Shown: positions 257-12,504, counted from the whole stretch's first letter. The stretch is DNA of 63,933 bases, filler included, from Octopus bimaculoides (GCF_001194135.2; 6 parts of 6 records of this genome joined end to end with filler, not necessarily neighbours in it); one strand, 5' to 3'. Notes: generated from the sequence alone by a model not told the origin. Numbers and translations are program-made.

Positions 257-341
257 TCCCGCATGTCTTAGTTGGTAGAGCATCAGACTTTTACGAACTG
301 ATGAGTAATGCAACCTGAGGGTTCGAATCCCTCTGCGGGCG
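257..341 (+). pseudogene. tRNA-Lys(UUU) pseudogene, intron-containing (copy 1)
   Basis: tcccgcatgtcttagttggtagagcatcagactttta-intron-acctgagggttcgaatccctctgcgggcg. 7 nt of the variable loop/T-stem are deleted, G1 is changed to T and the D-arm is mutated. Confidence 0.85.
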
Positions 342-1208
342 ACAGTAATTTTGCTTCGATATGTTTTCTGTAATCAGCGCATGATCATCGTCGTAAAATC
401 ATTCTGGACATTCAAAATGTATACACACTGTAGTATTTAGTTTCTTTTATAATACAAATTACTAGTGGTATAGTTTCTTTACAAAATATCACATCCTCTT
501 AATGACAAGGCAAAAGAAAAAAACAAGTTAATATGTAATATGAATGTTTGAAAAATCTTTGAGCTATGCAGAAGATGAGTAAACAAAATATATAAGGTGA
601 TGTCAATAAATTAAAACAAAGAGATCCTTTAACATTTCGGGAAAGATTCCCCTTTTCAAATAGAAAAAAATCAGAGTTCAGAGAAATCTATTGCTACCAG
701 CAGACCATTTTAGTATGTTGTAACGAAAACTATTGATGGATTACTGTATTTATAGTTCTGGTTGCTGAGATAGGCAGTATCAGTGGTAACAGTTAGTTTG
801 ATGAAGCAACAGCAGTCACATGACGAATTAGTGCAAGTGTGTAAAGAAGTGGTGGGAGAGGTCACTCACTCACAGCTGAACTTTAAAGTTGCATTAGACA
901 GTAAAGGTATTTTGAGGATTTCTTTGTTCAAAAAGGATAGGTCTTAAACTATTAGTTGTTGTAAAATATGCTATATTGATGTGGTGAATGTATGTGAGAA
1001 ATAAGTTTGAAAGGAGAGCTAAAGTAGTTGGTGAAAGACAGAGAAAGTGAGTATGTGTCATTCAGTTCGGTTCTGTTACTGATTTCTAGTTTATAACGTT
1101 TGATAAGAATAGCCTCCTTGATTCTCAAGTTCCCATTAGATATAAAGCTTACGATATAAAACTTACGATAAAGTAATTCGTGAGACTCTAATTAAAAAAT
1201 TATACCAT

Positions 1209-1378
1209 GGCGCACGCATGACTGTGTTGTTAAAAAGTTCGTTTTGCAAACATATTGTTTCGGGTTCAGTCCCACGTGCAGCAGTTTGGGCAAGTGCCTT
1301 CTACTATAGCTCCGTACCAACCAATACCTTGGGCAAAAACTGTGTGGAAGCTGGACATATATGTAACTGTGTGTGTGT
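1209..1378 (+). mobile_element. tRNA-derived SINE head, local family A (diverged)
   Basis: ...cgggttcagtcccac...ttgggcaagtgccttctactatag, homologous to 30645-31030. Confidence 0.75.
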
Positions 1379-1477
1379 CTTTTCTATACATGTTGATCGG
1401 TTTTGGAATCATCGTCAAGAAAACTTCTCATACCACTGTTTTTTCTGCTTAGGGAATTTTAACAGGAGCCTGTTAAT

Positions 1478-1697
1478 AAATATTGCTGTCAACTTTTGGC
1501 ACAGGGTTAGTAATTTCGGAGGAGGGGTTAAGTCGATTACACTGACCCCAATGATCAACTGGTATTTATTTATCGACCCAGAAAGGATGAAAGGGAAAGT
1601 CGACCTCGACGGAATCAGACCTCTGAACGCAAAGACGGACGAAATGCCGCTAAGCATTTTGTCTGGCATGCTAACGATTCTGCCAGCTCACCGCCCT
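1478..1697 (-). mobile_element. SINE, local family C (Nin-like core)
   Basis: Reverse strand reads ggcggtgagctggcagaatcgttagcatgcc...gaggtcgactttccctttcatcctttctgggtcgataaat...accagtt. Confidence 0.8.
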
Positions 1698-2960
1698 ATC
1701 CTGGTAAGAAATATAACGACGAAATCTGGTTCTATAGAATTTCTTGCATTTTTCTATTTGCAAAGAAAAAATAAATCTCGACGGATCTTCCCTATGAAAT
1801 AATGCAACAGTAAATTCTACCTCATATATGTTGCAGTGTGAAACTGCCTGGAATAAGACAATAAATGTCCAATATGAAATTTTAAAATATATTTCACAAA
1901 TATTTTTCGGGGTGAATCAAGAAGTTCACCTGTTTATATACAACGTCTTTTAGAAACAACACGGGAATTCCTTTGAAAATTAAATGCTTTGNNNNNNNNN
2001 NNNNNNNNNNNNNNNNNNNNNNNNNNNNNNNNNNNNNNNNNNNNNNNNNNNNNNNNNNNNNNNNNNNNNNNNNNNNNNNNNNNNNNNNNNNNNNNNNNNN
2101 NNNNNNNNNNNNNNNNNNNNNNNNNNNNNNNNNNNNNNNNNNNNNNNNNNNNNNNNNNNNNNNNNNNNNNNNNNNNNNNNNNNNNNNNNNNNNNNNNNNN
2201 NNNNNNNNNNNNNNNNNNNNNNNNNNNNNNNNNNNNNNNNNNNNNNNNNNNNNNNNNNNNNNNNNNNNNNNNNNNNNNNNNNNNNNNNNNNNNNNNNNNN
2301 NNNNNNNNNNNNNNNNNNNNNNNNNNNNNNNNNNNNNNNNNNNNNNNNNNNNNNNNNNNNNNNNNNNNNNNNNNNNNNNNNNNNNNNNNNNNNNNNNNNN
2401 NNNNNNNNNNNNNNNNNNNNNNNNNNNNNNNNNNNNNNNNNNNNNNNNNNNNNNNNNNNNNNNNNNNNNNNNNNNNNNNNNNNNNNNNNNNNNNNNNNNN
2501 NNNNNNNNNNNNNNNNNNNNNNNNNNNNNNNNNNNNNNNNNNNNNNNNNNNNNTTGTTTTAATAACAACTAAACAATAAAAATAAACCGTAAATAATTTT
2601 TTAAAAAGAAACATAGCAACAATAATATAAAAAGAAATAAAAGAAAGAACACAACCTAAGGAAACTGTAATCTCTGAAGATTTTATTAAGAATAATGATC
2701 AGTCTGCATACATCAGCAGGTAAAGCATGTGATATGACATGACATTTCAGAAGTGAACGAATATATCAAAATATAATACCTTGATATGAGAAGGAATTAA
2801 AATTTTAGTTATGACCATGTGATTAAGTAAGATATTAGATATCAAAACTATAATGAACTTTATACAACAATCATTGCAATCCACAGCAAATTTTCAATTG
2901 TTGATTATCGCTAAGTCCAATATGATTAATATATCTAAAATTTGTTTCGTTTTAACGTCA

Positions 2961-3052
2961 GCCCGCATAGCTCAGTCGGTAGAGCATCAGACTTTTATGT
3001 ACTGTCGAATGATGAAATCTGAGGGTCGCGGGTTCAAGTCCCTCTGCGGGCG
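2961..3052 (+). tRNA. tRNA-Lys(UUU) with 19-nt intron (2998-3016) (copy 2)
   Basis: 37-nt exon GCCCGCATAGCTCAGTCGGTAGAGCATCAGACTTTTA plus 36-nt exon ATCTGAGGGTCGCGGGTTCAAGTCCCTCTGCGGGCG. 7-bp acceptor stem, A and B boxes, intron after position 37, T-run terminator at 3059. Confidence 0.92.
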
Positions 3053-3607
3053 ATAAAATTTTTCTTGCAATACCATTTTTTTTTTTCTCGTAGTCGAACA
3101 AATTTTCACCGTGATAATGTTACAATTGTCATTCAAAATTCTTTTGCGTTGTTATATTTCCATTGTGAGTCAGTCTATTGGTGTATCAGTCCCACCATAC
3201 AATATCACATCATCATCAAATCAGAAAACGTAATTATCATTGCTACATGTAAATTAAATTACTGTCCCGCCCTCTGAAGCAGTTCTGTGAGACCTAGGGA
3301 TATTTCACCTACTGCTATTTCCATCGACAGAGAAACATTTATTTATATCGTGCTAGATTTGTCTTGGTCACCTAAAAATTGCACAACATCTATCTTACCT
3401 TCATTTGTTTCCACAAGTGTCACAATTTCGTTGCACCACTGTGACCTCATTAACGGAGCTCTTCTGAAACTGATTAAAATTTAGGTAATAGAAACATATG
3501 TTAGATCTTAACTCTATTTATCTGTTCTACACCTGTTGATTAGCCTTAACATCTTGATATTGTTATTAGTTGCTTCCAGCTTCCATTATTATCTTCATTT
3601 ACAACTT

Positions 3608-10707: not shown

Positions 10708-10801
10708 GCCCGCATAGCTCAGTCGGTAGAGCATCAGACTTTTAAGAACTGTCAAGTAACATGGTATCTGAGGGTCGAGAGTTCAAGTCCCTCTGCGGGC
10801 T
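10708..10801 (+). tRNA. tRNA-Lys(UUU) variant with 21-nt intron (10745-10765) (copy 5)
   Basis: Exon 1 identical. T-stem GAGAG/CCCTC has an A.C mismatch and the discriminator is T, so it may be non-functional. Confidence 0.75.
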
Positions 10802-11849
10802 ATATGTATTTTCTTTCAATACATTCAATTTTTTTTTCGTAGTCGAACACACTTTCACCTTGCTAATCTTACAATTGTCATTCAAAATTTTTCGTTTTTC
10901 TCAATCATTTCCCAGCTTGACAATGTTAAGCCTGTTGTTGGAAATACTTTTACGCTGTTCTATTTCCATTACAATTCAGTCTTCTGCTGTTTTATTCCTA
11001 CCATGCTATGTCATCATCTTCGGCCACAGTCTGATGACTGAAACAAATAAAATATATTCATTGTCGCATGTAAATTAACGATCGGCTCTGGCAATTCTGT
11101 GAAACATGGGTATAGATCTCTGACTACAGTTCTCATCTACAAACAGACATTTATTTACATCGTACTAGATCCATTTCAGCCATCTAAAATCTCACACAAT
11201 GCCTCCTATTAAATTTTCATGTATTTTCATATATTAAACTTCGTTGCACCACTGTTGCACCTTAAGAACAAGACTATTGATTATTACATTTTAAGATATT
11301 ATGATATTAGTGCCAAGAAACAGGATATATATATATATATATATANNNNNNNNNNNNNNNNNNNNNNNNNNNNNNNNNNNNNNNNNNNNNNNNNNNNNNN
11401 NNNNNNNNNNNNNNNNNNNNNNNNNNNNNNNNNNNNNNNNNNNNNTGTTGTTGGAAATACTTTTACGCTGTTCTATTTCCATTACAATTCAGTCTATTGC
11501 TGTTTTATCCCTACCATGCTATGTCATCATCTTCGGCCACAGTCTAATGACTGAAACAAATAAAATATATTCATTGTCGCATGTAAATTAACAGACGGCC
11601 CTGGCAATTCTGTGAAACATGGGTATAGATCTCTGACTACAGTTCTCATCTACAAACAGACATTTATTTACATCGTACTAGATCCATTTCAGCCATCTAA
11701 AATCACACACAATGCCTCCAATTAAATTTTCATGTATTTTCATTAAACTTCGTTGCACCACTGCTGCACTTTAAGAACAAGACCATTGATTATCACATTT
11801 TAAAATTTTATGATATTAGTGCCAAGAAACAAGATATATATATATATTT

Positions 11850-11956
11850 AGAGAGAGAGAGAGAGAGAGAGAGAGAGAGAGAGAGAGAGAGAGAGAGAGA
11901 GAGAGAGAGAGAGAGAGAGAGAGAGAAAGAGAGAGAGAGAGAGAGAGAGAGAGAGA
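11850..11956 (+). repeat. (GA)n microsatellite
   Basis: Direct reading. Confidence 0.95.
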
Positions 11957-12195
11957 TATCCTTTGGTGAAGAATGAAAATCACACTCACACATTTAATAG
12001 AAGCCTGTAAAGGATAGTCATTATACATTGGTGTGAACATGCAGAGTGACACCATGAAGACAGCCAATTGTTATATGATTGTAACGATCTGATATTGAGT
12101 AATGGAACTGTAACTTATGTATGGATGGAGGGATGGATATAGTAGCTAAGTTCAATAAATTTAATCTATCTAAATTTAGATAGTACTACTCGTCA

Positions 12196-12287
12196 GCCCG
12201 CGTAGCTCAGTCGGTAGAGCATCAATCTTTTATGAACTGCCGAGTAGTGAAATCTGAGGGTCGCGATTTCAAGTCCCTCTGCGGGCG
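12196..12287 (+). pseudogene. tRNA-Lys(UUU) probable pseudogene with 19-nt intron (copy 6)
   Basis: Anticodon stem TCAAT (vs TCAGA) and T-stem GCGAT (B-box GG changed to AT) both break pairing. Confidence 0.8.
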
Positions 12288-12423
12288 GTGTTTTTTTCTT
12301 TTGGAGCTTCCCACTGACCCTAATTGACTACTCTCAAAGATAGATAGATGGATAGATGTATGGATGGATGGATGAGCTATGGTCAACAGATTTGATCTAT
12401 CTAAATTTTCGATGAGTTACTTG

Positions 12424-12504
12424 TCAGTCGGTAGAGCATCAGACTTTTAAGAACTGTCGAATGATGAAATCTGAGGGTCGCGGGTTCAAGTCCTTCTGCG
12501 GGCG
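12424..12504 (+). pseudogene. 5'-truncated tRNA-Lys(UUU) pseudogene with intron (copy 7)
   Basis: Starts tcagtcggtagagc. 14 nt including most of the 5' acceptor strand are lost between two tcag repeats. Confidence 0.85.

Follow-up and report, generated by a model that had tools for sequence, protein, structure and literature searches.

Whether interrupted tRNA-Lys(UUU) sequences lying side by side in an octopus genome are working genes with a spliceable intron, and whether that intron was gained in the octopus lineage or inherited from an older ancestor, is the question raised by a stretch of Octopus bimaculoides DNA (GCF_001194135.2) of 63,933 nucleotides, filler included, which joins six parts of the genome and is hereafter called the window. 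Within it, seven tRNA-Lys(UUU)-like copies, here named c1 to c7 and all on the + strand, span positions 257-12504 (~12.2 kb). The features described below make it likely that these copies form a locally duplicated nuclear cluster, that their ancestor already had an intron at the canonical site between positions 37 and 38 of the tRNA, and that an old intron has been retained here rather than a cephalopod novelty acquired.

Copies and their state of preservation

Copies were searched for by sensitive blastn over positions 1-23209 of the window, with the c3 unit as query. The matches correspond exactly to c1-c7, with no further fragment, and blastn detected no extra copy in the remaining 10.7 kb of this searched portion and none within the 21.7 kb of Octopus sinensis DNA sampled. 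When the cloverleaf was evaluated against the Rfam tRNA model RF00005 (gathering score 29), c2-c5 reached 59.0-59.7 bits (E ~1e-10), c6 and c1 scored 36.2 and 34.6 bits, respectively, and c7 gave no match owing to the loss of its 5' acceptor strand. The full cloverleaf is kept only in c2-c5, c1, c6 and c7 being decayed.

The two intact genes are c2 (2961-3052; exon 1 2961-2997, intron 2998-3016, TGTACTGTCGAATGATGAA, exon 2 3017-3052) and c3 (7818-7909; exon 1 7818-7854, intron 7855-7873, AGAACTGTCGAGTGATGAA, exon 2 7874-7909). Both score 59.0 bits, have identical exons, carry G at intron position -3 (counted back from the 3' splice site), and are followed by a run of thymines, a T5 run beginning 8 nt downstream of c2 and a T6 run after c3. 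In c4 (8874-8965; intron 8911-8929, AGAACTGTCGACTGATAAA; 59.1 bits) the exons are intact except for A57G, with A instead of G at -3. The variant copy c5 (10708-10801; 59.7 bits) has a 21-nt intron (10745-10765, AGAACTGTCAAGTAACATGGT, G at -3), a discriminator U73 in place of G73, and a T stem of the form GAGAG/CCCTC, in which A50:U64 is paired and A52:C62 is mismatched, the latter reflecting a G52A change in the B box.

The remaining three copies show heavier lesions. In c1 (257-341; exon 1 257-293, intron 294-312, CGAACTGATGAGTAATGCA, exon 2 313-341), the A box and D arm are mutated, a deletion has removed 7 nt of the variable loop and 5' T stem, and U39 is replaced by C. In c6 (12196-12287; intron 12233-12251, TGAACTGCCGAGTAGTGAA), the 5' strand of the anticodon stem reads TCAAT versus TCAGA, the T stem and B box have become GCGAT, and position 7 has G in place of A. 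The truncated c7 (12413-12504; intron 12450-12468), recognized by blastn and alignment, lacks ~14 nt that make up the 5' acceptor strand and the beginning of the A box and shows C62 changed to U, its intron and exon 2 being otherwise close to those of c3.

Regarding the transcription signals, the A box TAGCTCAGTCGG and the B box GGTTCAAGTCC are intact in c2-c4, with changes affecting the B box of c5 and c6 and the A box of c1 and c7, and T-runs (T4-T7) start 4-10 nt past the discriminator base in all seven copies. The anticodon UUU and G73 are found in c2-c4. A C50:U64 mismatch is present in the T stem of every copy in which this stem is readable, c5 excepted. Considered together, c2 and c3 look fully competent and are the strongest candidates for functional genes, c4 with its A at -3 and c5 with its G52A and U73 changes are doubtful as such, and c1, c6 and c7 are to be regarded as pseudogenes, so that the working copies are probably two to four of the seven. 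The original prediction, which spoke of seven same-strand copies with a 19-21-nt insert exactly after A37 and terminal T-runs, thus holds by alignment, Rfam and blastn as far as the copies and their layout are concerned, and was overstated in calling all seven of them genes, given the decay of c1, c6 and c7, the loss of the pairing between anticodon loop and intron in c4, and the G52A and U73 changes of c5.

Automatic annotation handles these sequences poorly. ARAGORN, run in its default (bacterial) mode, called 2961-3052, 7818-7909, 8874-8965 and 10708-10801 "tRNA-Stop (tta)" because the insert was placed one base off, and labelled related environmental genes "???", Leu or Pro; this mislabelling of intron-bearing Lys-UUU genes constitutes an annotation trap. 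A reading frame spanning c3 was also translated and searched against a protein collection for spurious frames over related tRNA genes, with no candidates.

Position of the insert and splicing features

In all seven copies the insert lies exactly between positions 37 and 38, flanked by CUUUUA on its 5' side and AUCUGA on its 3' side (ACCUGA in c1), and it measures 19 nt in every copy but c5, with its 21 nt. The one intron property reported to be critical for excision by the eukaryotic tRNA splicing endonuclease TSEN is the anticodon-intron pair, formed by position 32 and the intron base located 3 nt before the 3' splice site (PMC10485636). In six of the seven copies (c1, c2, c3, c5, c6 and c7), C32 faces G(-3), this pair being lost in c4, where A occupies -3. 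Since none of 92 related genes described below has a base other than G at this position, the c4 precursor is predicted to be poorly cut at the 3' splice site despite its intact exons.

By analogy with the established pathway, a maturation route can be proposed for the better copies. RNA polymerase III (Pol III) would transcribe the gene from its A and B boxes, probably aided by a TATA-like upstream block ending at -18 (see below), and would terminate at the T-run. TSEN would then measure from the mature body of the tRNA and, using the C32:G(-3) pair, cut at 37/38 to take out the 19-nt intron. An RtcB-type ligase would join the halves into ...CUUUUA|AUCUGAG..., for which the predicted junction is GACUUUUA|AUCUGAG, and the released 19-nt intron may be circularized into a tRNA intronic circular RNA (tricRNA).

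Conservation of exons, introns and flanks

Identity was computed by region among c2-c5. Exon 1 is 100% identical and exon 2 94%, the intron drops to 77%, and an upstream block located at about -53 to -19 reaches 79%, whereas the ~18 nt separating this block from the gene show only 37% and the sequence farther upstream and downstream ~50%. The earlier observation that the exons are nearly invariant and the introns variable is therefore reproduced, and the gradient fits selection acting on the mature tRNA, with a weaker constraint on the intron and some constraint on the upstream block as a candidate element.

The core of this block comprises 31 nt (AAGTTCAATAGATTTAATCTATCTAAATTTT) and lies at 7770-7800 on the + strand as AAGTTCAAYAGATTTAATCTATCTAAATTTT. 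Its other copies lie on the same strand at 209-239, 2913-2943, 8826-8856, 12148-12178 and 12379-12409, and the version belonging to c5, at ~10660-10690, carries an indel. In c1, c2, c3, c4 and c6, exactly 18 nt separate the end of the block from the beginning of the tRNA, a distance kept across an unconserved spacer, and the block contains the TATA-like sequence CTAAATTTT at -26 to -18. It is absent from the rest of the window and from every environmental and Octopus sinensis locus fetched. On these grounds, it may serve as an upstream promoter element for Pol III.

Similarity between copies is not restricted to the transcription unit, as it begins at least 53 nt ahead of the tRNA and extends beyond the T-run terminator. 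Repeat families D17/D18 and alignment distinguish two kinds of downstream flank, both on the + strand. The first follows c2 (3053-3150), c5 (10802-10899) and, on both sides of an assembly gap, c3 (7910-7954 and 8093-8156); the second is common to c4, c6 and c7 (for example 8966-9065). Two flank types together with similarity outside the transcribed region indicate duplication of two unit types at the DNA level. With exons 94-100% identical against 37-50% for the flanks, and with similarity running past both transcript ends, the pattern agrees with local DNA duplication combined with selection on the tRNA and not with the spread of a short interspersed nuclear element (SINE).

Intron-bearing tRNA-Lys(UUU) genes elsewhere

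Metagenome contigs were scanned with the pattern TCGGTAGAGCATCAGACTTTTA-N(10-40)-ATCTGAGGGTC, and 107 of them (L001-L107) were found to contain intron-bearing Lys-UUU genes. The same pattern occurs in bacterial and archaeal genomes on one contig only, assigned to a metagenome-assembled genome (MAG) of "Rubritalea sp." (L108/L109, CBDBEG010000035.1). This 14.4-kb contig consists of a 1054-bp tandem unit, repeated at least 14 times, with Glu-CUC, intron-bearing Lys-UUU and Leu-UAG genes, and reads as eukaryotic (host) contamination of the bacterial MAG.

The scans combined yield 92 distinct genes. In 78 of these, the exons are of the animal type (GCCCGG...), with ~12 variants among them. The introns of these 78 genes measure 11-32 nt (median 20), begin with AG in 54 cases and have A at -4 in 63, and many of them contain a CTG motif at positions 4-8. 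The base at -3 is G in all 92 distinct genes, positions -1 and -2 being free. Five distinct genes (on contigs L065, L082, L083 and L088) have the exact octopus T arm including C50:U64, and eight more have U50:C64. Since this mismatch recurs in environmental genes, it is a tolerated feature of the family and not a mark of decay.

The neighbourhood of two exon types informs on the organisms concerned. Next to the commonest type, a p21/p27-like cyclin-dependent kinase inhibitor gene (Pfam CDI) lies 1.1-1.6 kb downstream of the tRNA in three species, whose CDI proteins are 50-72% identical and whose tRNA regions are 91-96% identical, with the intron kept in all three and the intergenic DNA of the most distant pair largely unalignable. 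A search with the CDI protein returned JGI, ENA and Logan proteins only. A second exon type adjoins an LRRNT/LRR gene. These neighbours indicate that the environmental genes so checked are animal. Many of the Joint Genome Institute (JGI) samples presumably stem from host-associated projects on the symbioses of gutless marine oligochaetes. By blastn, no environmental contig shows non-tRNA similarity to the window or to Octopus DNA, and therefore none of them is cephalopod.

Some individual contigs deserve mention. On L048 (Ga0224510_10007999), an intronless Lys-CUU and a Lys-UUU with a 19-nt intron (3157-3229 and 4393-4484) form one tRNA cluster with flanking Gln-CUG and Gln-UUG genes. L007 (OFDO01002803.1) is a 1.6-kb contig with 32% G+C, on which a Lys-UUU gene (1286-1380) combines near-human exons with an intron of 22 nt; a HisI/RsmH frame that is clearly bacterial (Pfam E = 1e-94) lies ~270 nt away, and the contig may be a chimeric assembly. 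Three contigs of 38-98 kb with dense long open reading frames (L013, Ga0247722_10000035; L037, Ga0209634_1000294; L038, Ga0214919_10000268) carry Lys-UUU genes that are not of the animal type, with 10-24-nt inserts at 37/38, and may belong to large viruses or protists.

Origin and age of the intron

A lineage-specific gain or retention of the intron had been put forward for the octopus cluster. The proposal of a lineage-specific gain finds no backing, considering that (i) the same intron hallmarks and near-identical exons occur in 107 metagenome contigs and one MAG contig, and (ii) one such locus is syntenic in three animal species; from these comparisons, retention of a widespread intron would be the better reading. 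To our knowledge, the tRNA-Lys(UUU) genes of human, fly and worm have no intron. Most likely, these model animals lack an intron that the octopus genes retain from an old ancestor.

The alternative that would deprive the cluster of function is that of a dead, locally amplified pseudogene family, whose insert is disabling or irrelevant, with intronless Lys-UUU genes elsewhere supplying the tRNA. Three of the seven copies are indeed plainly decayed, c4 and c5 have suspicious changes, and all copies have a mismatch in the T stem. Nonetheless, decay of the whole family is hard to reconcile with the contrast between the exons of c2-c5 and their flanks, with an insert bearing every hallmark of a spliceable intron and a G(-3) found in 92 of 92 related genes, with the conservation of the same T arm, mismatch included, in other organisms, and with an intron-bearing orthologue conserved between species of another animal clade. 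An entirely dead family is thus unlikely, and retention of an old intron in a cluster with some working members accounts better for these features.

An intron gained recently in cephalopods, with the environmental genes as independent gains at the same obligatory site, has also to be weighed. In its favour, tRNA intron spectra are patchy in eukaryotes, being lineage-dependent in yeasts, where recent gains are documented (PMC4090602); moreover, what the octopus intron has in common with the rest is limited to short motifs, AGAACTG.. at the 5' end and GAA at the 3' end, and the octopus acceptor stem is present in no environmental gene. Against it, 78 distinct animal-type genes in ~12 exon variants all have introns of similar length, mostly with an AG start and many with CTG, and the nearest exon type, that of the L065 group, has both the same unusual T arm and an intron that ends in ...GAA. 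Inheritance from one ancestor is a simpler account than repeated parallel gains, and a recent acquisition appears very unlikely.

tRNA-Lys-related SINEs are described in squid and octopus, and the window is rich in long interspersed nuclear elements (LINEs) and other repeats. That the copies could be the head portions of a SINE derived from tRNA-Lys, or of another tRNA-bearing retroelement such as the molluscan Helenus elements, whose long terminal repeats (LTRs) carry Lys-TTT-like sequences (PMC10886601), is nonetheless hardly credible and was rejected on flank homology and terminator position. Homology sets in more than 50 nt before the tRNA begins and includes a conserved block at a fixed distance; the Pol III terminator lies within 10 nt, which would prevent co-transcription of a SINE body; the downstream flanks are of two kinds, with neither target-site duplications nor LTR structure seen; and all copies sit together on the same strand, none being dispersed in the window or the Octopus DNA sampled. 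The organization of a tRNA-derived SINE, with head, body and tail, dispersed copies and homology beginning at the transcript 5' end, is accordingly not the one found. The initial statement that these are real tRNA genes rather than SINE heads is therefore upheld for two to four copies, with similarity beyond the transcript ends, exons far better conserved than flanks, and G(-3) in six of the seven introns.

Several observations weigh against retention of an old intron in working genes. The C50:U64 mismatch sits in the T stem of the good copies themselves. Minimum-free-energy folds of the precursors do not recover the textbook anticodon-intron helix unaided, and when the cloverleaf is imposed, U33-U36/A37 pair with the 3' end of the intron and A38 instead; since the textbook helix is not returned, folding has not been used here as evidence. 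The evidence for an animal origin of the environmental genes concerns two exon types, those with CDI and LRRNT/LRR neighbours. Independent gains may have occurred at the one site that TSEN can use, and intronless Lys-UUU genes outside the window could supply the mature tRNA.

On balance, retention within a locally duplicated cluster is still the reading that we favour. A broader proposal, which we advance tentatively and would not yet bet on, is that this is an old, selectively maintained intron of a large, mostly marine group of invertebrates, possibly comprising much of Spiralia or beyond, with an invariant C32:G(-3) pair, and that vertebrate, insect and nematode model species have lost it.

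Assembly gaps and surrounding repeats

No copy touches a run of N. The gap at 7955-8092 lies inside poly-T behind c3, and the sequence beyond it continues the downstream block of c2 and c5 in register; the true gap should therefore be close to zero. The distance from the gene to this block is 35 nt in c2 and c5 and 46 nt plus the gap in c3. At the gap 11346-11445, the 400-nt flanks 10946-11345 and 11446-11845 are 94.6% identical and contain no tRNA, and one of them is probably a haplotype or assembly duplicate rather than real sequence. A third copy of this flank, 80% identical, is found at 8198-8495. Two large gaps (562 N and 641 N) could each accommodate at most one more unit.

Among the repeats, 15145-15642 and 19165-19470 are fragments of a non-LTR retrotransposon, the first with an RVT_1 domain narrowly below the Pfam cut-off, the second with an open reading frame typical of a LINE C terminus. 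The only named protein relative of the reverse transcriptase fragment at 15145-15642 is from Octopus sinensis, and the DNA surrounding the gene of this relative, on chromosome CM016860.1, matches the LINE of the window at 82-86% over ~1 kb. Short interspersed repeats at 1478-1698, 3725-3968, 17360-17571, 17930-18070 and 18427-18602 match an Octopus sinensis piece (L116) at 70-85%, and have no relation to tRNA-Lys. Together, the repeat matches of 70-86% point to an octopod-like cephalopod as the source of the window. Two open reading frames of the window, looked up by exact sequence, had no entry on record.

Comparison with known systems

Full-text searches of the literature turned up no account of an intron in the Lys-UUU genes of molluscs, cephalopods or other invertebrates, and the common occurrence of such introns with invariant G(-3) in non-model animals appears to be undocumented in the literature searched. 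The inventory of animal tRNA introns is commonly said to comprise only Tyr, Ile-UAU, Leu-CAA and vertebrate Arg-UCU; here, a canonical intron in Lys-UUU is seen in a cephalopod and in many animals represented in metagenome data. Were all Lys-UUU genes of these animals interrupted, their AAA/AAG decoding would depend on the tRNA splicing machinery. If the intron is old, it would define a fifth conserved family of animal tRNA introns, overlooked since model species lack it, and all tRNA-Lys(UUU) decoding would rely on TSEN and RtcB. The invariant G(-3) of 92 genes provides in addition a natural data set on the requirements of TSEN, even though the cluster reveals no new mechanism.

We know of no intron-dependent modification of Lys-UUU, such modifications being a matter of other isoacceptors. 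The mature octopus tRNA presumably differs from human tRNA-Lys3 at ~5 of 73 positions, two of which would be a compensatory change of the acceptor pair 6:67. Intron-dependent modifications have been described for Tyr, Ile and Leu tRNAs (PMC12168002). The usual intron-bearing animal tRNAs listed in the original prediction agree with the GtRNAdb survey, in which animal tRNA introns are found mainly in Tyr-GUA, Ile-UAU, Leu-CAA and Arg-UCU (PMC12168002). These introns, Arg-UCU being that of vertebrates, resemble the octopus ones in position, size range and anticodon-intron pair (PMC10485636), presumably share TSEN and RtcB with them, and differ in residing in other isoacceptors.

As regards fungi, the intron of S. 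cerevisiae tK(UUU) coincides with that of the octopus in isoacceptor, canonical position and removal by Sen/TSEN. Lys-UUU is among the ten intron-bearing families of yeast, and we take its exons and 23-nt intron to be unrelated in sequence to those of the octopus. That ten tRNA families bear introns in yeast is reported in PMC12168002, and the two systems part at ligation, carried out by Trl1 in fungi and by RtcB in animals (PMC4090602).

The closest counterparts are the environmental Lys-UUU genes. Unlike the octopus copies, they have neither the GCCCGCA/UGCGGGC acceptor stem nor the upstream block, and their base at -4 is usually A versus U in octopus. They nevertheless belong to the same isoacceptor, with exons 2-6 substitutions away, and share the 37/38 intron, G(-3) and T-run terminators, some of them being arranged in tandem arrays; those of the L065 group have, in addition, the GCGGG/CCCTC T arm with C50:U64 seen in octopus.

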